Assembly: GCA_964199315.1 (NCBI GenBank) | Contig: OZ116704.1 | Location: 11,966,001 to 12,030,000, forward strand | Reading direction: 5' to 3' | Origin: Orbicella franksi | Taxonomy: Eukaryota | Length of the DNA: 64,000 nt | Translations under genes and position numbers: made by a program | In this document: piece by piece, positions 31,018-55,029 of the stretch | Layout: each line of letters begins with the position of its first letter | Position numbering within the stretch: position 1 is the first letter of the stretch | Notes under the pieces: generated by a model | Databases searched by the model: none | Told to the model about the DNA's origin: nothing | Seen by the model: the letters and a program-made list of their open reading frames with translations, nothing else

Positions 31018-34000
31018 ATGAGGGCGACAGATTAGTAAGTCACTTAAACACGCAGCCTGTGTTTTCTACTTAAGTGTCTAACATCAATTTGTGATGCAAG
31101 GCTTGTATCAACTGTACCCTTGACTAAGCTGAACAAACATTGTTTTTTTTTTTTTCTCTTTTAGCATAGCTATCCTTGGGATCGCAATTTTTGCCAGATC
31201 TTGTGAAAGCAAAGTGGATCCCCCTCAACCGACGTCACCAGGTCAGTTATTGGTTTATTGGCTGACAGACTAACTGAAGCTGTTAGGTCGATCTACATTC
31301 ATTCTACTTCACATATCTGAATCCAGACTGCCCTTAAACCTGGTCTACAAGAGTTAGAACGTTCGAAGATATCATGCTGTAAGGAAAATTGTCGGGTAAC
31401 AACAACACTGAATAACAACTAGCTTTATTTGTATGACCATAAATACATACTGAGTGTTGCAAAAGCTTTTGTAAACTAAAACTAAAACACTGATAGAGCT
31501 TTTCCGTAAAAAGAACCTTACAAATGTAAATATGCATTTCACGACCTTAGGCATGTCAATGAGATGGCTATTGTTTCTCTTTCAAGAAAGAACCGCTACC
31601 TCGCTACCTTCGCAAATACCTTATGAAACCAGATAAATTTTAAAAGCACATTGTTGCTTCTCAGATATAGAAGACCTTCACAAAATCGTCGTAACAAGAC
31701 TAACGATCGTAAATCGCCGGCTAGATACAACGCTGTTAATTTACATGATAGCTTTGTCGAGACTGTTTCTTCTTCGCTACAGTTCTTGGAATAAAGAAAT
31801 ATGGCGTTCAGCAAGAAATGTTCAAAATTCTACGACGACTGATAAAAGCCATCGTCCCTGACACCATATTCCCGACACGTAATTATAATCCTTCAAATGT
31901 CTAAAACTATCGTCACTCGTTTACTCGTTTACGAGTGTCGATAAAACGCTGAAAACAATTATTGTGTTCAATAATTTCTATTTTTTAGTCTGCTACTGTT
32001 ACTCGATGCGCCATAATTTAAGGTGAGCTCTTTGAAGGTTTTGACATTTAGCAACAGGCCTTATAATCGAACGGGCGGGGAATTTACGTGTCTCATGTCA
32101 GAATGGGTACATTTGCATCTGTACGGTTATTGTACGGAAAAACTCTAATGATTGTCGTGAACATATGATAAAGTTATGATAGTTATAGCAATCAAGTTAC
32201 ATCGGTTTGAATTGAAAGAAGGAGTATTGACAGTATTGCGCAGATCAAAACAAGATGAAATGAATTTTGCTAATTAAATATTAACGTAATGATTTGTAGA
32301 AGTCATGAGTTTGTCGGTAGCTTGTAACGAAGATAATTGTTTAAAAGTCGGAACGATATTCTCTATTTTTCATCTTTTTTTATTCATCTTTTAGAGGCAA
32401 TGTATAAGACATAAGTGAGATTCATCTTCAATTTGATTATATTCACAAATAGGGCAGAGTCTGTTAACCCTTGGAATTTGATCATCGCTACCAGATTCAA
32501 TCCTTAGTTTGTGATTACCTATCGTACATTTTGCAAGTTCTTTTCTTTCGCTTAGTTTGCTTGTAAAGCCTAAATAAGAGGAAGGTGTATAAGAAAGAAA
32601 CGATTATTTTCAACAGGGTCTGTGCTACTTGAATAAGTCGTCAGTAATCGTTCTGACGCATTCATCAGCTACTATTCTTTGTTAACACAGTCAATCAACA
32701 TTTCACCATTTTATTTTATCGGCTCTCAGTTAAAGTCAATTGTCGCACTCTGTAAACTTGAGTAAGGCAGGATTCTGCTTGAACTAAACATGAAAACATG
32801 GACTGTTTTACAACCGCCCTTCCGGACAGACAAAACTATCGCATTAATTTTCGCCGAAATCCAACACTGTCTAGCACATATACATCCATCGTATGCACAA
32901 GGCTTGTATTGATTATTAATTTTCTTTAGACGAAGAGCAAAAAACGAACCGGCGAATGTCGGATCCGTTGAAGGTTCCCAGTAAGACAAAGTCAAAATGG
33001 TTAAGAGCGCTGTGTAAGCTAGAGGTTTGTCCTAATGGACATAATTTTCCGACATCTTTGTCTCCAAAACAACAAAGTTGATACCGGTATTAGAGCGCCC
33101 ATTGCGTAATTATACTCTTTTTTGTTTAAAAGAATATATATTATAGGATTATCGAGGCTGAAATTTGTGAAAAGAATAAAATTTTGTATATTGAAAATTT
33201 GCAAATACCATACAATCATATGTTTTTTAACTAAACCGTATAAAATTCCTCCTGTTTCTCAGTAAACAGCAATAATAGCCTAAAAACGGCAAACTCGGCA
33301 CTAGCCGTATGTTCGCTGCGAAAATAACATTTTTGCAGAAGTTATGTGTGTCATCTTCGGCTTTATTGCCTGCAGTCTGGCTCCAAAATTGCTTCAACGT
33401 CATCAAAGTCACGATAGGACAGATAATCTGACGTTTTGTTGGCAAAGTCCACTCTGTATTCCTTTCACTAATCTAAGAATATTTACAAGAATATTTTCAG
33501 CCTAAAATCGGCAGGAATATAAGAATGCTTGTTGTCTAATCACTCTGCAGTGAAACCAAAACAAAATAATTTCTAACTTAGTACAAGTAAGAAAACATCA
33601 GTCCTATGGGAGGTGGTATCTCTTTTACTGATCAGACATGAACAGCCCTAACATAGTTTATTACAATAAACATAAGCGGTCCAATGATAGTTATTAATAC
33701 AACAAATGTACTGAACAAAAACACGGAAATTTTACTAAAACAAAAATTTCCAGAATGAAGAGATCAAAAATGGAGATGCTGTCGAGTGACAACTCCTAAC
33801 CACAAACTGCTTAAATATTTGCTTCTTAGCATAATTACGTAACCTGCATACCAACGAATCTAAATACCGCCACACAACTATCTTACAATAACAAAGTGAA
33901 AAATTATGTTCAGCCTGAGAAATAATATTCTTATAAAAAAAAGAGTGTATGGGGTATCAGTGAAGTGTCTCCTTCTATAAACTAGTCTTCCAAATTTGTT

Positions 34001-34810
34001 CAAAGTTAGTACGGTCAACCACAATAAAATTGTAATCGACAATTCTTCACCGGATAATTGTATTACGGAGCAGGTGTTAGTTTCAGCAGCAGTATTTTTC
34101 AAGGCAATATTCGTTGCATATTTTCCAGAGATATTATACCAGATTGCGAAACTGGGCGAATTAAGCAATTTCATAACAAATCGCTTATTTTTAACTACTC
34201 CCTAAATATAACCCTAAATACAATGGTGGCTTATCTAGAAGTTTCCCACTGAGATCAGAATAGTCGCCAAGACTTGATAGATTAAATACGTGAAATTGGT
34301 TATTTCACAACAAATTGCTAATTGTAGTATTTGCTAAATTTAACAAACTGTCCAGAAGTTTCCACTGAGATCAAAACAAAATAGTCGTTAAGTCTTCATA
34401 GATTAAATACGTGAAACTGGTTATTTCATGACAAATGTAGTATTTGCTAAATTTAGCAAACTGTCGGTCTAGAAGTTTCAATGTAACATTAGAGAATTAG
34501 GTGATTTGACGGCCAATTGCTAAGTTTAAAGATAATTGATTTTAGAGACTGGTCTTCAGGTTAGATCAACAATCCTTTTAAGTCAATAGTCCAAGTTAAT
34601 CCCGCAATTTGAAGTATTTCCTATTTTTACCATACTGTGTTGTTTTAGCTTAAGTTAGTCCATCTTTTCGATATCAGGAGAAAATTGCCCAAATTAGCTC
34701 CGCATTTGATAATTACAACACGGCCGTTCACAAATTAAAACAACAATCAGCAATTACGAAATAGAAAACACGTACCGTGTTTCTATCGAGTTATAGAAAT
34801 ACGAGTGGAA

Positions 34811-34842
<32 letters not shown>

Positions 34843-37800
34843 GAGCCGCATGCAATTGCCATACAATTGGAATTGTCCCAGGGATAATAATTATATCCTC
34901 CTGTTCTATCGTATTCGTTTGAGTGGACGGCTCGGGTTGTCAAATTTGGGGATTTCTGGCAGTAAGTCAGCTGATAAGTCTTCTCTTTAAGACCGGGATA
35001 ACGGCAGATAAGTTTCTTCGTAAAACATTTCCTTGTGAAAAATTCTGATCGGCTGGTCGCAACCGCCGCCCTAAAATTTCTGAAGGATTTGGGATCTTTC
35101 AGACTGTCACTGCGGCTTTGTAAGATCCTCGTGCAATTTGTGACATTTAGGCCCTTTTCTGGACACCTTGAATCCGTTCTACATTACCCACGGCAGCAGT
35201 GTTTGCTTTCTAACATTATTTAAGCTGATCAAAAGCCTAGCCCACCAATCTTTCCTTTTTCGCCTGACTTTCTGGTCTAGAATACAACGCGCCCATGCAA
35301 ACCCTTCTACCGGACTGTAATTCTTGTCAGAGTCATGTGGGGGGTCTCTGGTGATGTAGTCTATCATTAGAAACTGTGCATGACGTTGTTATACGGAAGG
35401 GAGTAACCAGACGGTGGGCGTATAAGCAGATTTGTTAACCGTATTCAGGGGCACCCAACGGATCGTTCCGGTAAATTATCTGTTCGGAAGGCCTTTAATC
35501 CCCTCTGATTTTCTTGAGAGAATTGGCACCTCAAACTTTCGTGATATGAGAAATTTAATGTCTGTTGTTTTCGGACTGTTGAAAATGTCGTTTTGGGTAC
35601 CGAAAAAAGGTAAGCTATCATTTTCGGAAAGGCGTTAAGACCTAAGGTTTTCGGGAAATGGACAAAAAAGCCCTAATAAATTCGAGAATACTCAAGTTCC
35701 CCTAGAATATCCGAACAGATAAAATTTTTTTAGTGCAACCTAAAATTAACCCACAGAGCTTTAAAAGTACTCCAGATAGCCTAAAACAGCGTCTAACAGC
35801 ATTCGAGAGAAAACGGTCGTTGGGTGCCCCTGCGTATTCTCCAGTTTGGAAGTTAAGCCTAACTTAACGGCTTATGACTAGGCGTAAGCCTTGAGCTGAA
35901 AGGATAACAGGATATGGAAGCAAAAGGTTGAGTGTATCAACCAACACCTGAACGACAATTACAACTGTGTAACTGTTCGAACTGAGTGAAGACAACGTCA
36001 ACAATGAATATCTGACGTCACTACGTATGTCATTGGCTCAAGGATACGGTTTTCAGGCATGCCACTCAAACAAACCAAATGAATGTTTCAAAATAGGCAC
36101 AACAAGTTAACATTATCAAATGGCAGAAAGCTTCTCAATGGATTAGCTATGCTACAGAGCGTTGAGTTTGGGATTACCGAGAACAAATCCAGCTACTGGA
36201 ATAGTGGAGGTTGAGAACGGGAAAGCCGAATTGTTGTTTTTTCGACCAGTTGCTTTTGTTGGGAGAACAATGCAAGGGGCGTGTTTTCAGCAGCCAGTTG
36301 GTAACTGCTCGATGAGAGTGGCCAAAGCACCGAAAGGTTACAACGAAGTTTTCTTTCCTTTTCGTTTACAGCTGTTACTGCCAAGCCACCGCAGTGCTCG
36401 TTTAACCACATCAACTACAACGTGGGAGAGATCTGGAATCCATTTCTGTTACCGAAAGGATACTATCGCTGCAAACGTTGTATCTGCAAATTGGTAAGTG
36501 CTACATATGGGGTGTGACTAAACTGTGCATTCAGCATCGTAACAGTATGATAATTTTGTTCAGTTCAATATTAATAAGTAGGAGATAGAGTAACACCCCA
36601 ACAGAACCACAAGGCTGTCTATAAAAGTGGAAAAAAGAAAGACAGAACACTGCAGTCGCACAACAAATGGTGTTGACAATATTCCGAATACAGTTGTAAT
36701 CTTCTATCGACCAAAGGCGTTAGTTTTCCAAATTCGTTTCTCGATTGGCAGTCCGATTTGTCATAGATGGAAAGTAAAGAGAATTAGTCCTGAGGAAATT
36801 TATCTAGCACTCCCACGATCGGCATTACTCATTTGCTGAACTTTATTCTCACTCACCGGGAACTCTACGTAGCCCTCGAACATAGTTTATATAGAGTTTA
36901 CCTCACCTAACTACACTGTAATAGTTTTTATCAGGGAATTTACAAATCGATGACGTTCAACAATCCAGCAGCGTTGTCGTGCAAAAGTCGTCCGTTCGTA
37001 AAGTTAACAAATTGACGTCAGTTTTTCATGCGTCTGTCCTGTTATTGATCATGAATTTCGTCATAACATTGTTAAAGTAGCTGTGGATCCACAAGGCGAC
37101 AGCCGAGTGGATCCGCAAACTACTGCAAATAACAAATTTTGACGAATTGTCAAATTGTCCGCTCTCAATCGTTGACGCATCGCATAAATTATAAATTCCT
37201 GTCTCTGTCCGCTTATTTACTATGAAAATTAGCCAATGAGCGCGCGAGAATTTCTGCAGTTATCGTAAAATTCTTATTTTCCTATTTCCCTGAGGTTTTA
37301 ATTTTGCAGTACGCCGATTTACTCTCGAAACAGTACACAAAAGGAATTTTCCTCAGTACATTTCGAAACGTTTTTAGCTGTGTCTGGCTAATTGGGTTTA
37401 ACTGCTAATCAGGAAAGTAAAGGTTACACGCGTTTACCTGAAATGCATGTTATCTTACATGGCCTCAAAGTTGTAAAAGAACCGATGTAAACCAAAGTCC
37501 AAACAACACTCTTTTGAACGAGCTTATCAGCTTAGTTGTCCCTTATTGTGGGATAATGGGTCTTGTCCTTGCCAATTGGATATAGAGGGAACTCAATAAT
37601 TTTTTTTAATACGTACCTCACGCTTTTAAATAACATATGCAAGTAAATGAACCAGCTCGCCCGAAGTCTCCCCGTAGCAAGAGACCACGATCATGGTCTC
37701 TTGCCCGAAAGAGGCTTAGAGCATCCGTCTGATGTGTGTGAAGGTCATGGGTTCGACTACCTTGAGGACTCAGATTTGTTTTATTTTCCTACACTCGTGC

Positions 37801-40800
37801 ATGACAACAGAATGTAATCTTTCTCATCGCTTTATGTTTTCAGTCAAGCGATGGCGCCTTGGCAATAATAGACTGCGAAGGACGACGGTGCAGAAAACCG
37901 TCATCGCATGGTATGTAAACGTTTTATAGTTGAGAAAAAGAACTGAATTGCAATGGTCGGTCGCTGGTTTAGTGCCAGTACTTGACAAGTGCCATCAAAA
38001 GTTTTAGAAAACAGGACGGCAGTTTCCTCGACAAAAAGTCGCGATTCTAACCTACCTTAATCTTCTTAATCATTAGCCATTCTAAATTTATTCAGTTTAT
38101 TCAGTTTATTTTGTACCTACATGGTGTTTTGTACCTTGGTGACCAAATATCTGGAGGTTGCCTTCGTTCACTGCAACAAATGGCTTGATGCATGGTAACA
38201 TAACCAGTGTAATTCTTTTCAAAATATAGCCATCGCCGTCTTCGTGCTCAGAGATGTGTACAGATCAATGGTCAACGAGAATAAATTTTATCTATTCTTT
38301 CTTTATTATCAAGCAAATAGAGAAAAACTTGTTTCGACACTGTGCACAAAGACAAAAGATTCTGAGTTTACTACATGTAAATTACATCTGACAACAAAAT
38401 CAACAATTAAAACCATATCGTTAGACCAGAGTTGCCTTTTGCAAACGGTAGTCTCCTAACTGCTAGCTTAACGTTTAAGGAACGATTTCCCCTTTCCAAA
38501 CATTAGATAGAGGCCAAGTCAAGAAAACTCTACATGTGGAAACTTCACCTTAAACTCTTGACTTATTCATTTAACTTTCAGCAAATCCCGCGCATAACGA
38601 ACAGCAAAGTAATTGTAGTCACCAAGGTACCCTGCGGAGTCATGGGACAGTGTGGAAGGTGTCTACCACGGGTCTAAATGTCACGCTTGCCAATCACTGC
38701 ATGGAGTGTAGCTGCACGGTTAGATTTTCTTCAGTCTAGTAATTAAAATATAAAGTTATTTGAACATTCGTATAACAAAACATAAAAATATCATCAGAAT
38801 ACAAGTGACCTTCAAGTGAAAGACTGCTATATGCCAATGTTGATTTCTAAAGGTGGACAGTCAAGGGACTGTACAAACAAGAACAAGTCAGATTATCATT
38901 ATTGCGTTTCGGTTAGAAATTTTGAACTGTCTTTCAAGACTTTCAAGACGTTCCGTTTATTTCGACAATTTTCCGATCGGTCGAGCCAAAATTATCCTAC
39001 CATTTATATTGACAGAAATCTCCGGGTAAATAGTCAACCAAAGACTAAGTTAACTACAAAATTCGGCTTGGTTGTATTTACAAGTACGGTTTATGTCGGG
39101 CGAAAACCACCACAAAAAGATTTGTTTACAACCAGTTCCAGCAACAAAGCAGGTAAGTGTAAACGTTTCTAAGTATTTTAAGAGGTTGGCGAAATTTATA
39201 AACTGTACTAACAGTAGGGTTTCGAATCAAGAAAACTATTTATAAAATTATGTTAAAAAATGTCGTCGAAAAAAAAGCTTGGCAAGTGCCATCAAAAGTT
39301 TTAAGCGGCCTTCACACGGCAAACTTAAGTTGGCAAACTCGTGTTGCCAAACTTCCAAAAGTTGGCAAACTCGTACCTTCACACGTCAAACTCGTGTCAA
39401 ATCACAACACACGGTAATTTGCAACATGGCCGACTCAGTGCAGTGGCACTCACGTACAAAAGTGAAACAGAAGAAAAGAAGAGAAGAAACAGAAAGCAGT
39501 GGAGAAATAAAGGTTTGGAGGAAACCCAGTTTGTCCGCTAGCTTCCCCATTTTCTTTTGTTTGTTTTTACGGTATCGTTGTAGACTACAAATGAAATGCC
39601 CCACACAGCTGGACAATTGTGAACCTCTTCGATGAATTTAAAGGTGGCCTCGTGTTCATCTTGAATTGCGTCCGCCATTTTGTGAAGTGTCACGCAAATG
39701 AATCACGTGAATAGAGCGCGTGTTTTGATTGGCTGACAGTTAACAACACATGTCTGCCAATCGTTCACACGTCAGAAAAGAGTTTACCAACACGAAACAG
39801 TTGGTGAAAAAGTTGGCGAGAATAGAGGCAAGTTCTACTTGTCGCCAACAGTTTGCCAACGTGTTTACCGACTGTATTTGTGCTGTTCACACGCACCAAC
39901 TTCAGTTTGCCAACACGAGTTTGCCAACTTTAGTTTGCCGTGTGAAGGCCGCTTTACAGCCGGACAACTGCGAACCTCTTCGATAAATTCAAAAGTGGCC
40001 TCATGTTCATCTTGAATTGCGTCCGCCATTTTGTGAAGTGTCACGCAGATAAATCACGTGAATAGAGCCCGTGTTTTGATTGGTTGATAGTCAACAACAC
40101 ATGTTTGCCAATCGTTCACACGTCCGATACGAGTTTACCAACACGAAAAAGTTGGTGAAATAGTCGGCGAGAATAGAGACAAGTTCTATTTGTCGCCAAC
40201 AGTTTGCCAACGTGTTTGCCGACTGTATTTGTGCTGTTCACACACACCAACTTGAGTTTGCCAGCGCGAGTTCGTCAACTTTAGTTTGCCGTGTGAAGTC
40301 CGCTTTAGAAAACACGACAGCAGTTTCTTCGATAAAAATTTGCGTACTGCATTTCGGCAATTTACTTCAGCATAAATCTTCGAGGCAGCAACTGTCCGAA
40401 AAAAATGTTAAGGGTAAACTGAAATAATCGTTTCCATAGATCAACAAATCAACCACTTCCACCGCTGTTTTTAACTTGCATGTTCCTGTTTATGGAGTGA
40501 TGAGTAGTGTGCATAATTACCTCGCCGCTATGTCCACCGCTAGCCAGGTTTATGCAGTAAATAATAGTTAAAGACAAAGCATCTGTCCGTCAAAACAATA
40601 ACAATGTCACAATTAACTCTTCTGTAATACACAAGCCGGTTTGTTACGAAAAATTTGGCTTACAAGTAATTATCCGACATATTAGTGAATAACAACAAAA
40701 GCGACTGAATCGACACGAAAAGCGGCAAATAATTTAAGCTTACGATGTCCAAGAACCGACACAATTTCGTTCCAAAAGTGAAACATGTTCTCACCATAAG

Positions 40801-43480
40801 TTCATTAGTTTTAGCATATTCACCAGTAACTGAGCTTGTTACCTTTCTCGAAGAGGCTTGATTAATCCTAGCTCATTTGAGAAAGCGAAGACGAATGCTG
40901 TTCTTTGCTTCAATTTAATCCTTGTGGCTTCCCAAAGCTTGAAATCCTTGCTCGACTGTTTTGACTTGTACAGGGAATATTCACCTCCGAAATTATTACG
41001 GATCATTATTAAATCAAAGCGTTTGTAGTAATTTTGTTCGAAACAAACGACTTTCGAGGAAACCGTTAAGCAAAATTTCCAAAGCAAATTCTGTTTCGTC
41101 GGCTTTCTTCACGTGTTTCACGCAACTCACGCTGAGAAAACTGGACGCGGCTGCCACTCAGTTTCCCGCCTTTTATATAACTATTCATTTAAGCCACACT
41201 GAAATGTTTATACAAAACAGTAGTCAACCGCAAAATGGACCTTTTCATAAAAGGCAGCCAATTATAAATTATTTAGTAAGTATTAAAATAAGCCTTACTA
41301 ACTTCGTTTTTAAGTTGATAATTCAAAAGAATATTTAATCTCAAACGAGGTAAGTGAGGCTAATTTAAAATGCATATAAAGAAATTTTAAATTGGCAGCC
41401 ATTTATGAAAAAGGTCCATTATCTGCTCATGCGGCACAAAATAGTAGCATTTGTACAGTTTATCTTGATCTTTTCACTTCGCCTGATAATGACGTTCAGT
41501 TAATATCGAAACGTCGAAGCTAAAAGTAAAACGATTTCAAGCAACCTTTTATCACACGTATTCATAGTGTAAAAATTGCTTGTTTTGATTGTTTTATGAT
41601 GCAGGATAGTTTTGTGACCTGCGCCATCAGAACATGTCCAGTCCTTTCCTGTGTGAATCAAACAAATACAGACGGAACATGCTGTCCTGTTTGTGCAGGT
41701 AAAATGAAGCAGTAGGTCATCCTGTCTGCAGCCTCTCTTACAAGCAATTTTCAAAACTTGCGCTTGATTAATAATTATACTAGTCTTGTTGTCTCCAGCC
41801 TTGTCACGCAATGACGTGGAATGCATCACGAAAGCAAAACGCCTCTTCGCATGCATTACCTTCTCAACCCTTATCACTCATATTTCTCAATCTTAATTAG
41901 TTTCTAAATTTGGTTTTATTTTCATTTTAGAAAGTTTACCAACACTGCGAAATCCATTGGGTATGTTAAGTTGATACTTATAATTTACTCTATGTATAAG
42001 TATGCTTTGAACACAAACCAGTTTTCCAACAGTTTTAAAAAAAGATTAAACTTCCTTAAGAAACTGTGTTTAAAAATCTGATCCCCTAAGTAAATTAAAA
42101 AATTCCGCGCTTCGTTTTTGCGTTACTTTCGCTGTTAGTAATTTATCTACATAGTACATGTCCATGGAATATTAATAGCCACTCAGTCGTGTTCTTGTGG
42201 AAGTCCACGAATCGTATTGGTTCTCTTATCGTTTTCTATTTAAGCCATAGACCACTCTTTCTATGGGCTCACCGGCGCAACAAAACCACGCGGGATTTTG
42301 GAAGAACACTTGAAAAGCTTGTAAATCACGTGCCGTTAGGCTGTGATTTACAAGATTTTCGAATTTCTCGAGTTTCTTCTTTTAGTGCACAGAATTGCAG
42401 TTTTTGTGCTGTTATTCTTTTGAGTGTCTTCTAAAACAGTTATGCTACTCACCCTCATTATCTATGAATGTTGTTTAGCGTTGATTTTTATAGCTTTTTT
42501 ATCCTTTAGTAACAGTTTCCAAGATAGTTGTTTTTCGCCATCTGCACGTTTTCTTATAGGCTGCCAAACAATGGGTAGATACTACGATCATATGGAATCC
42601 TGGTATCCCAGAAGACCTCCAAGATACGATATGTGTATCAACTGCACTTGCAAGGTATGAAATTCAGACCTAACGCTATTTGCAAACATCGCTCGAAACA
42701 AGCTAAGTAGTTCGGAGCAAATTAAGTTTGTTACATCGGGACATAAAAAAGACGTACTTTTCTCGTAGCGGTTCGTCGCAATGAACATTCTCTGTTGTAG
42801 AGTTTACTGTAGTATTCGCATACGTTTGTGCTTGGGAAGATTACAGAGAGGAAAATAGAAGGTCTTCAATGGACGACAGGAAGACAGAAGATCAAAATCG
42901 AAGAGCCTCCCCACCTCCCCCTTTCTTCTTTGCGGCCTTCCCTGAGCACCATATCTGCCATAACCCCCTTGAAATCCTCTGCAGAGGAGAAAGTGTTATA
43001 AGCTTCAGTTACTGTCCAACTGCAGCGAACACCGTCAAAATAACAGTACAAATATACAGCAATATCGTACAGTTATTTGTACAGGAGAATTAACAAATTG
43101 ACGTCAGTTTTTTAGGCGTCTGTCCTCTTATTGATGGTAAATTGCGTCATAACATTCTCAAAGTGGCTGTGGAACCACGAGCTCCAGACGAGTGGTTCCG
43201 TAGTAAACTTTGACAATGTTATGACAATGTTATGACGTTGTTTGTATTTTGACGAGTAGGGCTCGTCAAAATACGGCAGAACTCGTAAAAATATACAGCG
43301 ATACTACACACCAAAACATCTAATAAGATATATACATATCCATCACTTCGACTAAAATTACGCTATAAATGGCCATCAAAATAACCAGTGAAAGCGCCTT
43401 CCTTATTTTGTAATTTTGACTAGCCCTGTGGGCAGATTTAACAGTGTCCAGATTCAACAGTGTCCAGAATTTTCCCTCTT

Positions 43481-43515
<35 letters not shown>

Positions 43516-46500
43516 GTCTGTCTCTCTGTCTGTTTCTCTATTACCAGCGCTTTTAAAATCGTTATCTGCGATTGAAACCATGATGCTTACTTTATTTTAT
43601 TCCTTAGAACACTTCAATAGAGTGCAGCCTTCCAGAGTGCCCCAAGATAACCTGTGTTAATCCTCAACGAAAACCGGGAGATTGCTGTGAGACCTGCCCA
43701 GGTATTACATCGAAAACTAATAAAATTCTGCCCCAGTGACTCAACCAGTGCTAGACTGCCATTGGCTACTTTCATCCAGTCGATGGATTCGTTTCGTGCG
43801 CAGAAATCAAACGAATTTTCGATGAAACACTTTTCCATTCGGCGCCATACTGTTTAGAAAATATGCGTACACTTTCCTAACTTTTGATGAAAATCTGAAG
43901 ATGAAGTATAACTGGACAACTGATTACTCGTTCGACCTTGGTAACCGAATACGCTCCCATTGTTCGCACAGATCATTAGTATTTAATAAACTTCTCAATC
44001 AATTAACTAACGCTTTTTTATAATTATGCTAATGAACTAATTGCTTAATACATTAAGCTGCTGGGTTAAACTTGTAATCTCTCCGCTTCTTCCCCTGTTA
44101 ACCATAATTTATTTCAGCAAACTCGGTAACCGCGTCGGTGAAGGAGCAGCCTTCTTCCAGTCCTGCGAATAGTATCAGTATGTTGATACGGTATGGATTC
44201 AGTCGACGAGGTAAGAGCTCGTGACAAAAGACAAGTGATAATCAGTCACATTGCCGAAAGATTTCTGTTTTGGGCTAGCTGAAAGAACTGACTACACCCT
44301 TTTTTGTTTATTTTTCATGCCCAGACTGAAAATATTCATGTACCATTTTACATCACAGCCGTACACTAGGACGATAGTATGTTTGTCTTGTAAATTTATG
44401 TAAAGATCGATAAGTTCCCAAAGTGTATGCAGCGTTCATGCCAAAACAATGTTATTTCGTTGTTTTTCACTTTAAATCAATATGCAAAAAATGTTCTTAA
44501 ATTTTAATAATTTCAGTCCTGGCATATTCGTAGTATTTCGCCACTCTCGGCATAATTATATTCATATAAAAATAATTCTTACAAAAGAAAAAGAGTATTT
44601 TCAATATGGTACTATCGCAAAAAAATATAGATGACAAAGACTTAATAAAAATTTTTCAGCTTCCAGACCGGAGATAGTTTCAAGAATGTATTTTTTTCCC
44701 TAAAGGAAGGAAAGTAACCAAAGAGTGCATTTGTGAAAAAAAAAGTTGTTACATTTTGGAATACCACATTTTAGAAGATTTCATGGTCTGGGATATCCAT
44801 ATATTCTTTCTGCACATATTAGTAATTTACAATGCACACATAGACAACTCTTAAATCTAATGCACATAGATAAAATTAACATTCTGCATCTAATTTAATT
44901 TGCCCTTATTATGTAATGAACTAAAGTAATTTGTATAAAGTAAACTTAACCATAACTTGATGCCTTAACTTCTTTACAGTCCGTAAGCATCGTACCACGA
45001 TTCCAGACTTATTCAAAATTCGACTGGAAAAGAAAGGTATGACATTGCAAAATAACAGGCCCTGCAACATTACTCGAGTAGTTCGCTATCTTCACTAACA
45101 TCTTTGACGTCACAAAGCGAGGCCTACACGCATGCGTATCTCTAGCGTAATGGCGTAATCAAAACATCATTCCCTGAAATACTGTCGCAAGACGAACCAA
45201 ATCTCTGATCTTTTGTTCGAACACAAAAACAAAACAGAGCAGCTATTGGAAAATCCCCACTGCTCTTGCGCCATGAGGTATACCGGAGTATGTTCAGATT
45301 TTCTTTGTCGTGCTCTATTGGAAAATCACGATCTCCGGGGCGTCAGGGCACCAGGGCACAGGATATCGGGGCTTCTTTTACCTCCTGCCCCCCAAACCCA
45401 CAATCACTCAGTGCTCAATGCACCGGGTCCACCGATGTAATAAGAATTAAAAAGGAATCCTCCAGAAGTTCGAGTAACAAGTGGACAAGAGCTTTGTACC
45501 GAGTTTATCTACATCGTATAACAAACCTCTGTACGACTGTTTTAAATATCTTCTCAAAAGAAATTATTTCTAACAACATCAAGTATCGAAAACAATTGTT
45601 GAAGTTCATAAGAACACTTGAAAGTACTAGTAGAACGAAACTGATGTTGAAATTTTACCTGTGGTTACACAATTTTACTGATTCTTTCAATTTATTTTCT
45701 CGGGATTCCATGGGAAACTGTCCTTGGTGTTATTTCGGCCTACTATTTATACCTTTAGCTTTTAGGAAATGCAAAAAGGTTTGTAATATACTCAAATTAT
45801 TCTGTACTAGGTTTTTGGCACGGAAAACCAAAATGACTCGATCCCCCATCGGATTTCATCTTAACCTTTCTCTGTGCTTTGAGCTCTGGCTGCCTCCAAA
45901 AAGCGCTCCAGAGACTGCCCATTTGGATGCTTGAAAGATTGCATTCAGCTTCTGCTCAGTTGCAAACTTAACATGAAAACTGTTTGGTTGGGTGAGCATC
46001 GATAGTTTCCTCAGTGCCGGCCAGACTAATTATACACGTATGTTTAACTGGGCAACGAATAAGTTGAGAAGGGTATACAAGAACGTCCACACACCATTGT
46101 TCTTCATTCAACCTCCCCTTTGGCACATCTTTCAGTATAACCGGCGTTGAACTAGCATGCCAGGCGGTAGGGAGTAAGAATGCTTTCTTATCTGTTTATT
46201 GCAGTTGCTCTATGATTTTATTTGCAGAGACGCCCAAGCTAGATTGCGAGTGGAATAACAAGTCGTATGCTCACAATTCTTCATTTAATCCGGTCGTTGG
46301 CAATTTTGGACCTTCTTACTGCGTCACGTGCTTCTGCAATGTAAGTTTATATATGGTGTAGCTGTATAGCACGTTAGTCTCTCCACGAACCCTCTATTTT
46401 TTCTTGAGTTCGTTGAGATCGTAAGCAAAAGCAGAAGGAAGAAGGGAAACACCTTGTAGCAAAGAAAAAACGTCTGAGGACAGACCAACACCACGCACAC

Positions 46501-49487
46501 TTCTATTTTCTTTTTTTTTTACATCTCAATAACACGCAGTTTTAATGTTGTTTATTGCAGCGATGGACCTTTTTACCAATGTTACACTTTTCCGAAGCTT
46601 TCGTTAAAACTAAAACAAAGCATCACCACTCGATTTATCACGCCAAATAAATAAGTAATTAAACATACGAGGTGTCATAAGAATCTGTCGAAAACTCATG
46701 CATGAAAATAGTTAAGGCAGCCCAAACGTTAGCCTGCGAGAGCATCCTGTTTTCTCGGTTCTTGTTTCACGCGGCGGAGACAAACGGCAGACGGAAATAC
46801 GTCTGCGTTCGCATGCTACCCAAATGTATACGTATGAAATACCTATCGAATATATGCCAGGAGGACACGTTCTCCCTGCCATACATTTCTTTGTACAAAT
46901 TGGCATGTTTGGGGCCCGGGGTAGACGCCCTTTTCACAAAAAGGCGTGCTCGTTGCATTGTACCTTTTGGGATTAAAAAAGCGGTTGGTACTGTCTCAGG
47001 GTGTTCAGCCTCAAAAGGTCCACAGCGGGAGCTTCTACAGTACCTTTTAGAGTACTGAGCCGAAAACGACATCACAGGATATTATGTGTTGTTTTAGAAT
47101 TGGTATCTCTTACGGGTGAAAACTCTTCTAAGGCACGTCCACAAAGAAGGTACCATTTAGGGGTTCATTTCGAAATTTCCGACGAGCACCTCCGTCCTTT
47201 TTGTATCGAAGCCCTCCCCCCCCCCCCCCGGATGGGTTTGGGGTCCCATATTTTCTTAAGTTTGCAACAGATTCTTTTGCCCCTTGGCATACATTTCTTT
47301 GTCTAAATTTGCAAGTGTTTCTTTTTTATATCGCGAGCTTGAGACAAAGAGAAAAAATCCGAGTCCCTAACGGGATTCGGACCCATGACCTCACAGATAC
47401 CGGTCGGGTGCTGAACGGAGGATCCCATTGTGAGCTAAGCTATTCATTTGTACGGTTCATATGTGCATGTGTCCAAAATACTGCTAAGATTGGCAATGCC
47501 TGAAACGTGCCGTGTAGAGATGAGTAATGACAGATAGGAAATTTCCAACCTCGTTTCCAGGGCTTTTCCAGATTTCACAGGGAAAAGCCTTGGGAACGAG
47601 GTTAGGAAATTTCAAGTTGAACCGGGCGTAACCTGTTTACCGCGACCACAACATACCCACGTTACCACGTTTCCCACGAATAAACAATCTAGCAAACAAA
47701 CAAACAAAAATTACAGAGCAAGCGAACTTAAAAACCTGGTTACTTTTGTTTGGTCCTTTCCTGTTTCAGGCCAATGTAATAAAATGTAGAAGTAAATCAT
47801 GTCCAACGAGTTACCCGTGCAAAGATCCAGTGTATGTTCAAGGAAAATGCTGTAAGGTGTGTGAAGGTAAGTCAGCACAAAATCTAAGGGACGCTTTCGA
47901 ACTTTTCGTCCATTTCCGAATTACCTTTAGCCTCTTAAGCGGGAACAAACTAGTTAACTAAAATCCAAAAAAGTAAGCTCGCTTCCAACATTCACGACTT
48001 GCAGGGATTAGATTCACTAATGTAAAGTTGGTTAAGACGTATACATGTTTTCACTAGATTCCCCAGGAAATCATACAAACGGAAGGAACCTTTGCAGTGC
48101 AGGAAAGCACTGGCTGGTCTACGAGTATATAAAGATTCCAAGAAATCAACAAAAGAACGCGTCCGAAGTACGGGAACAATTCGCACTGGAGCACAAGGAC
48201 CACGATACGGTGGAGATACACACCATTTACGCTAACATGACAGCAAAAGTTATAAAGACCACGAATACTACCAAAAGCCAGTTCCATGGAATTTTGAAAA
48301 AAAATGGCAAAGATTATAAAATCCTTGGAAAGATTCGTGAAGGTGAGTCATCGTATTTTTAATAGATATCTCAGGGTGAGGCATCATTGGTCAAAAATGT
48401 CAGTCGAGAAATGATGCATTTCTTAAAGGATCTCAGTCACAGTTTGCGCATATTGAAAAGTTTAGCCTCAATTTTCAAATTCGTCGTTTGCAATCCGTGT
48501 CAATCTTCTCCATCCTTAGCCATCCTTGTTCCTTTATGGTTTATAATGATCTCTTTGGTGTTTTTCTATCTTATTAAACTGTTATTTTCAGGTTTCCTAC
48601 CATTTAAAGATAATTTTGTATGTGGCCAAGTTAACTCAAAATACCGTGACTGAGCTCCTTTAAGGTACCTAGCCGTGATTAGGGTCATCACGGAACGCGA
48701 GTAGCGTTGCCTGACGACCCCCTAATAACGGCTGCGAAGGAGCATAGGAAATGATGGGCTAAGAAATTTTCACTGATAGCTTTGAAATCTCTAAGATCTG
48801 CATAATAAGGGCTCCTTCAAACACATTCTGGTAAGGCAGCTGCTTGGTGGTATTATGTTTCAGAATCACATTCTGTGAGGCTATTAGCAGGGTTTTCTTT
48901 CGGAGGTCTCGAGTTCCACTCCTCGTCTAGCTTGTGAACAGACTCTCTAGTCGAGGATGGGGCGAAGAGAAAGCAGAAAGAANNNNNNNNNNNNNNNNNN
49001 NNNNNNNNNNNNNNNNNNNNNNNNNNNNNNNNNNNNNNNNNNNNNNNNNNNNNNNNNNNNNNNNNNNNNNNNNNNNNNNNNNNNNNNNNNNNNNNNNNNN
49101 NNNNNNNNNNNNNNNNNNNNNNNNNNNNNNNNNNNNNNNNNNNNNNNNNNNNNNNNGACGCCCCACCCAACTCCCCCCTCGGCCACTTCACTCTCACCCA
49201 GTTCCTTCTCTGCCTTTCCATCCGCGGTCAGACTCTTCCAGCCGGCGCCTGTTCATAGACTACTCCTCGTTCACTCATTCGACTAAATGGTTCTGATTTT
49301 GTCTATTTCAGTTCAGAAAAACAAGATCAAGACTTGGGAGCAACGTGCCTGTCATCACACTCAAGGCTGTATACATACAGTGCGAAAAATAATGAAGGGA
49401 CTCTATGAACGTGTGAGACGGTGCGGCGATCATGCCACATCAGGGCCCCCACAAACACTCCTTCAACTTCAACCAGAGAATCCTTGA
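31018..49487 (+). CDS. CHRDL: Chordin-like (CHRDL1/CHRDL2-type) secreted BMP-modulator homolog, 15 coding exons, 506 aa: signal peptide + 4 VWC/CR repeats (CR1 truncated) + CHRDL C-terminal domain
   Basis: All introns are GT-AG and phase-compatible. Exons: 31018-31034, 31165-31241, 36372-36493, 37844-37910, 38582-38718, 41605-41698, 41931-41960, 42560-42654, 43608-43701, 44118-44177 (alternative donor 44210), 44980-45036, 46228-46340, 47770-47866, 48058-48342, 49312-49487; total 1521 nt. N-terminus MRATDYIAILGIAIFARSCES is a signal peptide. CR4 CEWNNKSYAHNSSFNPVVGNFGPSYCVTCFCNANVIKCRSKSCPTSYPCKDPVYVQGKCCKVCE closely resembles vertebrate CHRDL1 CR3. The tail (LVYEY...EQFALEHKDHDTVEIH...CHHTQGCIHTVRKIMKGLY) resembles the CHRDL2 FALEHEASDLVEIY and CHRDL1 C..VC...LVKVLY motifs, recalled from memory. 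The symbol is family-level; CHRDL1 versus CHRDL2 cannot be assigned. Confidence 0.88.
34238..34478 (+). repeat. ~116-bp tandem duplication in CHRDL intron 2
   Basis: AGAAGTTTCC(C)ACTGAGATCA...ATAGATTAAATACGTGAAA...GTAGTATTTGCTAAATTTA occurs twice, plus a third AGAAGTTTC start. Confidence 0.9.
35446..35832. mobile_element. 387-bp hAT-like MITE with 15-bp perfect TIR and 6-bp flanking duplication
   Basis: CAGGGGCACCCAACG / CGTTGGGTGCCCCTG; CGTATT on both sides (35440-35445, 35833-35838). Confidence 0.85.
37005..37270 (+). repeat. Interspersed repeat; second partial copy at ~43090-43235
   Basis: TAACAAATTGACGTCAGTTTTT..GCGTCTGTCCT.TTATTGAT..TGCGTCATAACATT..AAAGT.GCTGTGGA.CCAC occurs in CHRDL introns 3 and 8. 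Confidence 0.8.
37715..37825 (+). mobile_element. tRNA-derived SINE, degenerate
   Basis: TTAGAGCATCCG...GGTCATGGGTTCGACT...GGACTCAGATTT (A-box/B-box-like); same family as 47335-47415. Confidence 0.6.
39304..40304. mobile_element. PIF/Harbinger-type MITE with TTA TSD and a 351-bp tandem duplication of its 3' half
   Basis: AGCGGCCTTCACACGGCAAAC / GTTTGCCGTGTGAAG(G/T)CCGCT termini; TTA at 39301-39303 and 40305-40307; units 39606-39956 and 39957-40307. A related empty site lies at 37981-38040. Confidence 0.9.
43481..43535. repeat. (TCTG)n/(TCTA)n microsatellite
   Basis: Seen directly, ~70 bp upstream of CHRDL exon 9. Confidence 0.9.
46915..47231. mobile_element. CCCGGG-terminus MITE related to 21792-22237
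   Basis: CCCGGGG start and poly-C CCGG end; internal GTACCTTTT subrepeats; GTTTGGGG occurs just left of the element and 4 nt right of it. Confidence 0.55.
47335..47415 (-). mobile_element. tRNA-derived SINE
   Basis: Reverse complement reads CAGCACCCGACCGGTATCTGTGAGGTCATGGGTCCGAATCCCGTTAGGGACTCGGATTTTTTCTCTTTGTCTCAAGCTCGCGA; it lacks a full cloverleaf. Confidence 0.65.
47546..47604. mobile_element. 59-bp mini-MITE with 9-bp TSD (MuDR-like)
   Basis: CAACCTCGTTTCCAGGGCTTTTCC / GGAAAAGCCTTGGGAACGAGGTTA; GGAAATTTC at 47537-47545 and 47605-47613. Confidence 0.85.
48928..49262. mobile_element. MITE spanning an assembly gap (N run ~48983-49156)
   Basis: TAGCTTGTGAACAG at left and CTGTTCATAGACTA at right are inverted ends around the N run in the last CHRDL intron. 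Confidence 0.55.
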
Positions 49488-50246
49488 GATCTTAACCTGT
49501 GCGACGATCGACAAATTAAACATGGAGTACGTTTTGACAAATGAACAAAGCCGCTGTATGTAACCATCGCATTAGACCACCACATCGGTGCGTGTTTTAA
49601 CAAGAAACCCTCGTGGTAGTTCATTGACAGTTTTAGGCCTTTCTCTGAGACGTTTCTGTGAGCGCAAGAAAAACAACAAGCAAACAAGGAAAATAGACAT
49701 TTTTTCTTAGAGATAAGTAGTTTGGAAACTTTACCATAGATTTGTATAGCTCCTGTAAATAACGAGTTTATGTGGGCTTCTTAAACGACTTGGCAGAATT
49801 TGTTGCCAACAGAAGAAATTCGTAGGCAAAACGTGTATCCGTTGATTTGATTATAGAGCATAAGGAATGTGAGAATAAAACCTGTAAGATTTTATCATGG
49901 CATTCGTTAGCATAGCTAATCAGATGAACTCGAGTGGGATTCAAAAGCAACTCACACGAGCGGGGCAAACGCAGTCCCCCGTAGCTTGCAGTGGAGGCTC
50001 ATGCGGAGGAATATTAATAAAAAGCGATAAATCCCATTTGCATTGAAAGGACTCACCGCATTAGCTTCGGTTGCAAGCTAGTTCCAGTCCAATGCCGAGA
50101 ATACGAATAAGGTCTACTGTTCCATACTGTACATCGCTGCTATCTGTATCCAACAGAATAACATGGGCATGATCAAGGCAAATGAAACGCGAACCAAGAC
50201 CACACACTGTTCTTACAGTTTGGTTCCGCACAAAAATGATACTTAA

Positions 50247-53415: not shown

Positions 53416-53643
53416 ACTCTTTCTTCTAACAATGAGGTCGCGTATTTAGGAGGAAACGACTTTCTTTCTCATAAAATCGGGTTGTAGAATAAGCGAACAA
53501 CAGAAAGCAATCAAAACCAGGAAATTGTAACAATCTTCGTGAGACGAACTTAGTTTCTTTCACATTACCCAGGGGTGCTTCGTTGTGTCAATCTTGTTTC
53601 AGTGTTATCCTTGGTGTGGATTTCCAAGAAGAATTCGGCGACA

Positions 53644-55029
53644 ATGGCAGCCAAGAGAACGGCTAAAACGGCGGTAAATGTTACCAAGGATTCATCGCTT
53701 TATGTCTCAGACGATCAAGATTTTGAAACAGACCTGGAAGACGATCTTGAGGACAGCCCCGACACACCAAACAAGACAACAACAGAACGTTACCTCGATG
53801 CCTGCGACTCCCTGAACACAGTTCCAGTCACCAAATTTGTTCGTCAGTGCACAACTGGTCATGTAGACCTAAAGCATTATGGAATCCGGGACATCGGAGC
53901 CCAGGCCGTCGCCATTGCTTTGGAAAGGGACATAATAGTGACATATCTATGTCTTCATGACAATGGCATTGGGGACGTGGGTTCAGTTGCTTTGTCCAGA
54001 ATGCTGAAAGACAACTGCTTCGTGTCGAATTTGGACCTTTCTGAAAACAAGATTGGAAAGGAAGGTGCTCGAGCTATTGCCGAGATGTTACTAGAGAACG
54101 CCTCCCTGCAGGAAGTGAACTTGAGTGGTTGTGGAATTCATGGTAAAGATATCAAGCAATTCTTGGACGCGTTGTCTTTCAATCCACACTTAAAGAGCTT
54201 GGATTTCAGTTACAATGATCTGGGAGACGAAGGTGCCATTCATTTAGGACGAGCCCTTTCAGCAAACCAAAAGGTGGAATTCCTTGATATTAGCTGGAAC
54301 AACATCCGGGCATCGGGAATCGAAGCGCTCGCTAAGGGACTCGCGGGGAATACGAAATTACTAGAACTTGATCTCTCCTGGAACTGTTTCCTGGACGAGG
54401 GAACGACTCATCTCAGTTCTGCTCTGGCGCAAAACCGTTGCCTGAAAGTGTTGGAGATGCATAGCTGCGGGATTCACACCGCTGGGGCTTTCAAGATCGC
54501 AGACGCCCTCAAGAAAAATCAAAGCCTTGAAGTTCTCAGGATCGGAAAGAATCCTTTCCAAAGCTCAGGAGCTTGCTCACTTCTCCGGAGTGTAAGATGC
54601 AACCAGACGGGGGCCCTTCGTGAGCTGCTGCTCGACGATGTCGTGTTCGACGAGGAATGCGTGAAAGAATTGTCTTCTCTTCTCGAGGAACGGCCCAACT
54701 TTACCTGCTCTTGGGACGTCAGCATTCGAGGCGGACACGCGGCAAAAGGAAAAAAGAGAAAGCCAGACGTTATCGAGATTTTCCTTACTTTTGTCCGGAC
54801 GCGGGGACTTCGTCTGATTGACTTGTTCAGAATGCTGGCCAAGGACGGCAATGCTACGAGTATTTCAAAAACCGAATTCATTGCAGGAATGAAAAAACTC
54901 AATGCTCCGCTCAAAGATCACCAACTGAGAGCGATGTTCGAGGTTTTAGATGTGAATCATGATGATCTGGTGGAGTTCTACGAATTCCTTGGTTCGAGGA
55001 GTCACTATTTGAAAACAGTGCGGAAATAA
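53644..55029 (+). CDS. LRRC74A: Intronless leucine-rich repeat protein (about 10 RI-like 28-aa LRRs) with C-terminal EF-hand pair, LRRC74-like, 461 aa
   Basis: Single ORF. The supplied track starts at GTG 53575, but the first ATG in good context (acaATGG) is at 53644. Repeats such as NCFVSNLDLSENKIGKEGARAIAEMLLE and NPHLKSLDFSYNDLGDEGAIHLGRALSA. An acidic N-terminus is followed by ERYLDACDSLNTVPVTKF, and the C-terminus has LIDLFRML...ISKTEF and DVNHDDLVEFYEF. This architecture fits the LRRC74 family; A versus B orthology is uncertain. Confidence 0.8.
   Translation: MAAKRTAKTAVNVTKDSSLYVSDDQDFETDLEDDLEDSPDTPNKTTTERYLDACDSLNTVPVTKFVRQCTTGHVDLKHYGIRDIGAQAVAIALERDIIVTYLCLHDNGIGDVGSVALSRMLKDNCFVSNLDLSENKIGKEGARAIAEMLLENASLQEVNLSGCGIHGKDIKQFLDALSFNPHLKSLDFSYNDLGDEGAIHLGRALSANQKVEFLDISWNNIRASGIEALAKGLAGNTKLLELDLSWNCFLDEGTTHLSSALAQNRCLKVLEMHSCGIHTAGAFKIADALKKNQSLEVLRIGKNPFQSSGACSLLRSVRCNQTGALRELLLDDVVFDEECVKELSSLLEERPNFTCSWDVSIRGGHAAKGKKRKPDVIEIFLTFVRTRGLRLIDLFRMLAKDGNATSISKTEFIAGMKKLNAPLKDHQLRAMFEVLDVNHDDLVEFYEFLGSRSHYLKTVRK

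Follow-up and report, generated by a model that had tools for sequence, protein, structure and literature searches.

In anthozoans, the second body axis is patterned by BMP signalling, the gradient of which is shaped by extracellular modulators such as Chordin, Gremlin, RGM and others. Chordin (CHRD), the CR repeats of which bind BMPs, has CR1 separated from CR2 by four CHRD domains and lacks a CHRDL tail. KCP and BMPER (CV2) are built from many VWC repeats, which are followed by VWD, C8 and TIL domains. Vertebrate CHRDL1 (ventroptin/neuralin-1) and CHRDL2 are secreted proteins with three CRs of the chordin type and no CHRD domain. The name 'chordin-like' has already been given to one cnidarian gene, HyChdl of Hydra, reportedly by Rentzsch and colleagues in 2007. 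The CHRDL family is bilaterian-wide, as chordin-like genes are known from the annelids Capitella (Ct-chrdl, expressed in the dorsal ectoderm) and Owenia (chrdl), and the C-terminal domain of CHRDL1/2 has been described as 'previously unknown and uncharacterised' (PMC9977687). Outside Bilateria, a placozoan 'Chordin-like' with four CR domains was proposed as a BMP antagonist (DuBuc et al. 2019, PMC6501881), and a later review places it together with the Kielin proteins of vertebrates (PMC11226491).

We analysed a window of 64,000 nucleotides of the coral Orbicella franksi (contig OZ116704.1, positions 11,966,001 to 12,030,000) and found a gene that we regard, with a probability of about 0.72, as a divergent cnidarian member of the bilaterian CHRDL1/2 family, encoding a secreted protein with a truncated CR1, three complete CRs and a CHRDL-like tail. 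Like CHRDL1 and CHRDL2, the coral protein is (by prediction) secreted, carries chordin-type VWC repeats and lacks CHRD domains, and the order CR1, CR2, linker, last CR and C-terminal domain appears collinear between the two, although the repeats differ in number and completeness. The tails of the coral protein and CHRDL1 have several motifs in common, namely a cysteine near the start, VYE, R..ALE......VE(I/V)H, a tryptophan and C-x4/5-C...C. There are also differences. The coral protein possesses an additional complete CR3 where CHRDL1 has a cysteine-free linker of ~80 aa, its CR1 is without the final four cysteines, unlike that of vertebrate CHRDL1/2, and its tail bears conserved N-glycosylation sequons (AN.T and N.T[KR]) that are missing from CHRDL1 tails. 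Four CR positions are found in chordin as well (e.g., oyster P0103 and a coral locus on contig C3). The placozoan gene, which was compared by description only, likewise comes from a non-bilaterian and encodes four CRs without CHRD.

The coral gene occurs as a single copy in the 497-Mb assembly and lies on the + strand, as do all features described below, with a transcribed span of at least 28486-49834 in the window. It comprises 13 constitutive exons, most of which encode fewer than 60 aa; all of their splice sites are GT-AG, and the coding sequence (1,431 nt, positions 28581-49487) specifies a product of 476 aa. The original prediction had described a 15-exon gene at 31018-49487. The presence of a multi-exon gene on the + strand ending at 49487 and consisting mostly of short exons was borne out, but the proposed exon 1 (31018-31034) is not used, as the first exon of both the transcript and the homologues begins at 28581. 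Coding thus opens with exon 28581-28624, which puts the gene start ~2.4 kb upstream of the predicted span. The figure of 15 exons holds only if two in-frame cassette exons are counted, whereas the expressed form has 13.

The 5' UTR occupies at least positions 28486-28580, contiguous with exon 1, and is covered at 100% by bases 1-95 of L001, a public RNA-derived transcript contig of 1,873 nt. Exon 1 (28581-28624) provides the ATG and the beginning of the signal peptide (MEGRSPLFGKTRSF plus 2 nt); it ends in a GT donor and coincides with an L001 block, and its 14 residues are all identical to those of P0015, the protein encoded by L001. Exon 2 (31165-31241), in which the signal peptide's hydrophobic core is followed by the first residues of the mature protein, is flanked by AG/GT sites and matches P0015 as well as the homologues P0007 (Desmophyllum) and P0014 (Oculina). 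The first part of CR1 (C..C..C.C) resides in exon 3 (36372-36493), recognised by Pfam VWC (positions 1-25), tblastn and the splice model. Exon 4 (37844-37910) ends the truncated CR1 with two further cysteines and is devoid of the CC..C motif. The N- and C-terminal halves of CR2 are encoded by exons 5 (38582-38718) and 6 (41605-41698), respectively, those of CR3 by exons 8 (42560-42654) and 9 (43608-43701), and those of CR4 by exons 10 (46228-46340) and 11 (47770-47866). Between CR2 and CR3, exon 7 (41931-41960) is a linker mini-exon of 30 nt, identified by 11 residues identical to P0015, AG/GT sites and an L001 block. Exon 12 (48058-48342) encodes the first 95 aa of the tail (C.xGK.W.VYEY, FALE......VEIH, N-glycosylation sequons and GKIRE, in this order), and the coding part of exon 13 (49312-49487) encodes its end (W..R.C-x5-C...KIM..L..R...C), with the stop codon TGA at 49485-49487. 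Each complete CR is interrupted by a single intron, and the two tail exons meet in phase 1. Homologue matches were obtained for exons 4-6 and 8-13, all of which are additionally backed by the splice model, and Pfam recognised exons 6 (VWC positions 15-57), 8, 9 and 11. The 3' UTR extends at least over 49488-49834, up to which L001 is aligned, and an AATAAA occurs beyond this minimum end, at 49874.

Transcription of the exon chain was confirmed in public RNA data. L001 maps to the window in 13 blocks with 98.5-100% identity, and P0015 is identical to the window translation at 474 of 476 residues. Four junctions (43701|46228, 46340|47770, 47866|48058 and 48342|49312), which join exons 9 through 13, were seen directly in contigs and raw reads of RNA runs, and the strand of the reads agrees with an mRNA from the + strand. 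The two cassette exons lie in the CR3-CR4 linker, and both are in frame and conserved in gene models of Oculina and Desmophyllum. Cassette exon A (44118-44210, 93 nt) has AG/GT sites and an open frame and corresponds to linker sequence in P0014 and P0007, and cassette exon B (44980-45036, 57 nt) is conserved in the Oculina P0014. If both were included, the product would gain 50 aa, yielding a 526-aa form. In all three RNA runs showing the joint (X15, X16 and X23), exon 9 is connected directly to exon 10, and no joint involving either cassette exon is listed for these runs.

Intron 12 (48343-49311) holds an assembly gap (48983-49156). Evidence for the joint across it, 48342|49312, comes from 22 raw reads (10 distinct start positions) and from the contigs of two more runs, and the homologues are continuous through ...GKIRE|VQKNK... 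at the corresponding exon 12/13 junction. As the gap lies inside an intron and is spliced out, it neither interrupts the coding sequence nor conceals any part of it. The same intron also contains a 243-bp element with inverted ends (48422-48664), and the introns of this gene carry repeats with very high RNA depth. A search of the window against Rfam matched zero families, so no known RNA gene accounts for the spike of RNA depth in intron 12.

The 476-aa protein is laid out as a signal peptide, a half CR1 with six cysteines, three complete 10-cysteine VWC domains and a tail of 154 aa, and contains 11 N-x-S/T sequons. By inspection only, the N-terminus (MEGRSPLFGKTRSF-CIAILGIAIFA-RSCES) begins with a basic n-region, followed by a hydrophobic core, and small residues precede the likely cleavage site. 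This pattern, which is conserved in P0007 and P0014, accords with the signal peptide foreseen by the original prediction. Pfam detected VWC on the protein at 2.8e-24, and no match to CHRD (PF07452) was found on P0015, while the oyster chordin P0103 does match PF07452; the only CHRD match in the coral genome is the separate locus on contig C3. The combination of CR repeats with an absence of CHRD domains was therefore upheld. Of the four VWC repeats anticipated, three are complete, but the N-terminal CR1 is a half domain, and this set of a six-cysteine truncated CR1 plus three 10-cysteine VWC domains is common to all eight cnidarian homologues. Pfam detected no domain other than VWC on P0015, P0007 or P0014, and thus none of the VWD, C8 and TIL domains typical of KCP/BMPER. 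Intact full-length homologues make up seven cnidarian protein clusters with 46-68% identity to P0015; P0016-P0019 and P0101 are Logan-derived, and one homologue is already present in NCBI as 'Chordin-like [Desmophyllum pertusum]'. The Hydra HyChdl, according to the original prediction, has a different architecture.

The tail is predicted to form an alpha/beta C-terminal domain of ~125 residues with four cysteines. Both motifs noted previously occur in it: exon 12 encodes QFALEHKDHDTVEIH, and exon 13 encodes C-x5-C and, after it, IHTVRKIMKGLY. C432 and C438 do not vary across alignment A4, and the tail follows directly after the last CR, as in CHRDL. With Pfam CHRDL_1_2_C (PF19548), no match at E values up to 10 was found on the tail exon, on residues 350-501 of P0007 or on the full-length cnidarian proteins; bird CHRDL1 matches the same model at 6.9e-68. 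A six-frame search of the whole genome with PF19548 gave ten weak matches, and the CHRDL-type locus was not among them. The original prediction had itself named the lack of such an HMM match as a refutation, and in formal terms this is what was observed. Nevertheless, we judge this test to be too strict, because profile-profile comparison and the predicted fold recover a relationship to CHRDL. Local hhalign of the cnidarian and CHRDL1 tails gave a weak alignment (E value of 1.4e-3), with VYE, R..ALE......VEIH and K..F in register, at a probability of 10-17%; the tail profile scored 26.2, in comparison with 12.5 +/- 2.3 (maximum 21.4) in 200 column shuffles. The tails aligned in local mode but not in the global mode of hhalign.

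When 1.84 billion proteins were searched by phmmer with the tail exon, 13 matches were retrieved, all cnidarian-like except P0012, a bacterial protein of 3,923 aa with a TPS secretion domain; we take this match to be spurious, caused by the composition of the N/T-rich stretch in the tail. In the ESM Atlas, no look-alike of the tail scored above 0.78. A word-indexed search with the CHRDL1 tail returned vertebrate CHRDL1 only, with neither CHRDL2 nor invertebrate members. A mixed cnidarian and CHRDL1 profile added one extra cnidarian cluster and some oyster chordins, and no bridging invertebrate CHRDL was found in that search.

The fold of the tail was modelled with AlphaFold2 from a cnidarian-only alignment, free of any bilaterian sequence (pLDDT 78, pTM 0.73). 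When the model was compared by Foldseek with 550,129 Swiss-Prot models, the top six matches were four CHRDL1 and two CHRDL2 entries, which are all CHRDL1/2 entries of Swiss-Prot, and every one of them matched at its C-terminus. Their E values ranged from 2e-4 to 5e-3, with TM of up to 0.53, and the next match had an E value of 0.08. The CHRDL1/2 alignments have an rmsd of 8-10 A and 14-21% identity, with predicted structures on both sides. Matches among AFDB clusters include C-termini of proteins named 'Chordin-like protein 2' and 'VWFC domain-containing protein', and no solved structure in the PDB matched at E <= 0.001. On this profile and fold evidence, the coral tail is a putative remote homologue of the C-terminal domain of CHRDL1/2.

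Sequence searches with the coral family also pointed to CHRDL1. Vertebrate CHRDL1 (~1e-26) was the sole non-cnidarian family among the 2,077 candidates to match at E <= 0.001. The BLASTP alignment of P0007 with bird CHRDL1 is collinear, covering CR1, CR2 and the last CR before it continues into the tail, and overall identity between the coral protein and CHRDL1 is ~23-27%. In a word-prefiltered, exon-by-exon search of the coral genome, bird CHRDL1 found its best match in exon 11, by a narrow margin (E = 1.6e-4, versus 7.3e-4 at another VWC locus). Maximum-likelihood trees of the individual repeats united the cnidarian CR2 with CHRDL1 CR2 (97/97) and the cnidarian CR4 with CHRDL1 CR3 (97/94), both to the exclusion of oyster chordin repeats, and addition of six other coral VWC domains left support at 95/87 and 91/88, respectively. 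These trees are based on 63 columns and were computed without KCP, BMPER/CV2, CHRDL2 or invertebrate CHRDL repeats, and the tree tool flagged long-branch joins. The coral CR3 has no counterpart in CHRDL1 and was placed near oyster chordin CR4 without support, and the CR1s of the coral gene, CHRDL1 and chordin grouped together (82/92). Assignment to the CHRDL class is sustained by the best non-cnidarian match, the pairing of CR2 and CR4 and the fold of the tail, but not by PF19548.

We considered three other readings of the locus. It might be a pseudogene or a chimera assembled across the gap, given the gap within its span and the intron repeats with very high RNA depth. The intact reading frame, canonical splice sites throughout, the spliced transcript at 98.5-100% identity, the gap-spanning reads and the intact homologues in the seven cnidarian clusters leave this reading a negligible probability, and we regard it as refuted as far as the present data allow. 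Alternatively, the protein may belong to the wider VWC superfamily (KCP/CV2/CRIM-like) as a CR-repeat protein specific to cnidarians, with a tail that resembles CHRDL by chance or through a bias of structure prediction. The lack of a PF19548 match, the low identity and high rmsd of the structural alignments, and the fragility of VWC trees built on so few columns, with flagged long-branch joins and with KCP and BMPER outside the sampling, all fit such an origin. A chance resemblance is difficult to reconcile with a model made without bilaterian sequences that ranks the Swiss-Prot CHRDL entries 1-6 of 550,129, separated from the next match by a more than ten-fold gap in E value, or with tail profiles that align in the same register and outscore all 200 shuffles. 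The position of the tail, immediately behind the last CR, is also identical, C432 and C438 are aligned, and no solved fold resembles it. We therefore give this explanation only a slim chance.

An unlikely, if less remote, explanation is that the coral gene goes back to a more ancient 'chordin-like' gene with four CRs, of the type described in placozoans and sister or ancestral to both chordin and CHRDL. It would then be no one-to-one orthologue of CHRDL1/2, yet still encode a secreted CR-repeat BMP binder. Such a descent would account for the four CR positions shared with the placozoan gene (PMC6501881) and chordin, the coral CR3 without a CHRDL1 counterpart and its unsupported position near oyster chordin CR4, the common grouping of the three CR1s (82/92), and the oyster chordins appearing next in the mixed-profile search. 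It is at odds with (i) the tail fold, which is shared specifically with CHRDL1/2, (ii) the pairing of CR2 and the last CR with CHRDL1 repeats to the exclusion of those of chordin, and (iii) the CHRD domains, which are present in chordin and absent from the coral gene, together with the existence of a separate CHRD-domain locus in the genome. We thus retain membership in the CHRDL1/2 family as the preferred reading, and the coral gene is probably an orthologue of CHRDL1/2.

By analogy with CHRDL1/2, chordin and CV2, the coral protein is probably a BMP binder. It would be secreted and N-glycosylated, and its CR repeats would bind BMP-family ligands, so that access of BMPs to their receptors may be blocked or otherwise modulated. 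The original prediction had suggested that it might act in axis patterning, budding or skeletogenesis. As to the age of the family, it is attractive to speculate, at odds we place slightly short of even, that the CHRDL gene and its C-terminal domain predate the cnidarian-bilaterian split, that the ancestor possessed four CR positions, the third of which was reduced to a cysteine-free linker in vertebrates, and that corals carry a BMP modulator absent from the Nematostella-based model of the directive axis.

We found no discussion of a CHRDL-type modulator of corals in the searchable literature. Within that literature, the gene is as little studied as had been supposed, with one homologue already deposited as 'Chordin-like'. 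Since the current Pfam model does not see the tail, cnidarian members would be missed by annotation based on domains, and the diverged set of cnidarian tails could be used to improve that model. The gain is incremental, as the family is known across bilaterians, a coral homologue already bears the label 'Chordin-like' in NCBI and the function proposed here is a predicted one. The gene nevertheless adds a candidate to the BMP modulators of corals, with a function predicted from its relatives, and can be followed up directly by in situ hybridisation, in single-cell atlases and in BMP-binding assays. Its identity as a CHRDL gene would date the family, together with its unexplained C-terminal domain, before the cnidarian-bilaterian split.

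Between 36 and 49.5 kb of the window, the + strand has open frames for halves of chordin-type VWC repeats (CRs) and for a cysteine-bearing tail. With the largest exon of this tail (window 48060-48341) as query, phmmer found 13 matches among 1.84 billion proteins, including a full-length 501-aa protein of Desmophyllum pertusum (P0007). A word-indexed search gave the name of P0007 as 'Chordin-like [Desmophyllum pertusum]' and also yielded P0015, a 476-aa product from a 1,873-nt contig of a public RNA run. Placing these homologues on the window by tblastn, and then searching for splice sites under the constraint of P0015, we obtained a model of 13 exons on the + strand with GT-AG at every intron: 28581-28624, 31165-31241, 36372-36493, 37844-37910, 38582-38718, 41605-41698, 41931-41960, 42560-42654, 43608-43701, 46228-46340, 47770-47866, 48058-48342 and 49312-49487. 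Its translation (476 aa) is identical to P0015 except for two residues. The exon chain is transcribed, as the contig aligned in 13 blocks of 98.5-100% identity over window 28486-49834, the two ends setting the minimum extents of the UTRs. The first exon originally proposed (31018-31034) is unused, and the start codon lies at 28581, outside the span of 31018-49487 first assigned to the gene. Several coral RNA data sets contain the transcript, and the 497-Mb assembly holds a single copy of the gene.

Four RNA runs were aligned to window 43550-49540. GT..AG joints were found at 43701|46228, 46340|47770 and 47866|48058, as well as at 48342|49312, which crosses the assembly gap at 48983-49156 within intron 12 and is supported by 22 raw reads beginning at 10 different positions, as well as by contigs of two other runs. 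Homologues, too, run on across the boundary of exons 12 and 13 without interruption; the coding sequence is therefore unbroken, and the gap conceals no exon. First mates lay on the - strand over the exons, which for most stranded libraries indicates + strand RNA. Between exons 9 and 10, two cassette exons on the + strand, 44118-44210 (93 nt) and 44980-45036 (57 nt), are open, in frame and equipped with good splice sites; they correspond to the stretch linking CR3 to CR4 in the Oculina model (P0014) and, in part, in the Desmophyllum model. With both included, the gene has 15 exons and encodes 526 aa. The original prediction evidently reached its count of 15 in this way, but that count needs the real exon 1 swapped in, and the RNA joints skip the cassettes: exon 9 was joined directly to exon 10 in all three runs showing joints (X15, X16 and X23), with no cassette-exon joint listed in any of them. 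We treat both cassettes as conserved alternative exons, as yet without transcript support in O. franksi.

A 243-bp element in intron 12 (48422-48664) is bounded by 22-nt inverted repeats (91% complementary), reaches an RNA-run depth of 15,000-40,000 versus 25-260 over the exons, shows many loose ends into unrelated sequence, and matches no Rfam family; it resembles a MITE-type repeat of very high abundance that is present in many transcripts. The stretches 45350-45750 (intron 9) and 46750-47350 (intron 10) reach an RNA depth of up to ~1,600, show joints on opposite strands, and are probably interspersed repeats whose RNA comes from copies elsewhere; Pfam matched nothing in a 222-aa open frame at 45266-45934. 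Intron 5 holds a local tandem duplication or repeat at 39250-40430, in which a ~350-bp unit occurs in two adjacent copies with near-identical open frames on both strands (e.g., - strand ORFs 39538-39693 and 39865-40044). A single open frame of 484 aa (53575-55029, +), ~4 kb beyond the 3' end of the chordin-like gene, encodes leucine-rich repeats (LRR_6, 4.9e-35) plus a pair of EF-hands and represents a separate gene or large exon; a second assembly gap (58980-59152, 173 N) lies outside the chordin-like gene.

As anticipated, the protein has an N-terminus typical of a signal peptide, judged by inspection, and VWC repeats (Pfam VWC, 2.8e-24) without a CHRD or any other Pfam domain. The four VWC repeats originally counted are in fact three complete 10-cysteine repeats and an N-terminal CR1 that ends after six cysteines in the cysteine-pattern scan. 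This arrangement is common to 8/8 cnidarian homologues, so that the truncation is old rather than an assembly fault. The tail (residues 323-476) bears four cysteines and conserved N-glycosylation sequons. The sole CHRD-domain match of the genome is on another contig, and a separate chordin-type locus therefore appears to exist; VWC matches flank that match on contig C3 of the coral assembly (30156537-30165681), which is presumably the chordin gene. Two single-exon VWC domains lie on contig C7 (18385167-18387162), ~6.4 Mb from the chordin-like gene.

Among named proteins, those of two stony corals, Oculina patagonica and Desmophyllum pertusum, are nearest, and run labels include 'coral metagenome'; the host is cnidarian rather than deuterostome. 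Outside the cnidarians, the word-indexed search with P0007 reached E <= 0.001 only for vertebrate CHRDL1 (~1e-26), with which P0007 is collinear in BLASTP through CR1, CR2 and the last CR into the tail. In the reverse search, bird CHRDL1 matched exon 11 best in the coral genome, only narrowly. Per-CR trees of 63 columns, covering cnidarian, CHRDL1 and oyster chordin repeats, paired coral CR2 with CHRDL1 CR2 (97/97) and coral CR4 with CHRDL1 CR3 (97/94), leaving oyster chordin repeats outside. Both pairings persisted (95/87 and 91/88, respectively) with six VWC domains from other coral loci, and in the larger tree the coral CR1 formed a group with those of CHRDL1 and chordin (82/92). CHRDL1 differs in having no counterpart of coral CR3, a cysteine-free linker standing opposite in the full alignment. 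Within this linker (alignment columns 293-361), R197 is invariant and H201 nearly so; they could be a trace of a CR since lost, or an accident of alignment.

The tail demands closer consideration. Even with reporting at its loosest (E up to 10), the Pfam family CHRDL_1_2_C (PF19548) matched no cnidarian tail, nor did it pick out the chordin-like locus when scanned across the whole genome, whereas bird CHRDL1 scored 6.9e-68; the absence of this match formally counts against the original prediction. Methods of higher sensitivity did reveal a relationship. In hhalign, 16 cnidarian tails aligned to 15 CHRDL1 tails with an E of 1.4e-3, placing VYE, R..ALE......VEIH and K..F in register, and the score of 26.2 exceeded all of 200/200 column-shuffled controls (12.5 +/- 2.3, maximum 21.4) and a reversed-alignment control (9.8). 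An AlphaFold2 model of the tail, computed from cnidarian sequences only (pLDDT 78, pTM 0.73), was compared with other predicted models: its first six matches among 550,129 Swiss-Prot models were the four entries for CHRDL1 and the two for CHRDL2, each matched over its C-terminal ~100-120 residues (E 2e-4 to 5e-3), and the seventh match had an E of 0.08. Matching AFDB cluster representatives included the C-termini of a 'Chordin-like protein 2' and a 'VWFC domain-containing protein'; no solved structure matched. Taken together, the profile-profile and predicted-fold tests argue for remote homology between the tail and the C-terminal domain of CHRDL1/2. That domain has been called previously unknown and uncharacterised (Martin-Zamora et al., PMC9977687).

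Judged by homology, the coral protein most likely undergoes secretion and glycosylation, and would most likely bind BMP2/4-, BMP5-8- or GDF5-type ligands via CR1-CR4, limiting or redistributing their access to receptors. Chordin/CV2-type proteins bind BMPs via VWC repeats, and in the CV2-BMP2 complex the contacts are made by the N-terminal part of the VWC; the corresponding part kept in the coral CR1 may likewise still be ligand-binding. The putative action is that of an antagonist or a context-dependent enhancer, which the sequence does not separate. Abstracts on CHRDL1 and CHRDL2 describe them as secreted BMP antagonists or binders.

CHRDL genes are known from vertebrates and annelids (for the latter, PMC9977687), and a 'chordin-like' gene with four CRs has been described in placozoans (PMC6501881). 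Transcriptome tables of corals and sea anemones carry the labels 'chordin-like' and 'kielin/chordin-like' without further analysis, and in the literature searched we found no paper treating an orthologue of CHRDL1/2 in cnidarians or the tail domain of such a protein. Because CHRDL is known elsewhere and one homologue is already 'Chordin-like' by its NCBI name, we class the coral gene, on sequence and predicted structure, as a putative divergent member of the known CHRDL family. Its relevance would lie in evo-devo and is moderate, rather than that of a first-order surprise.
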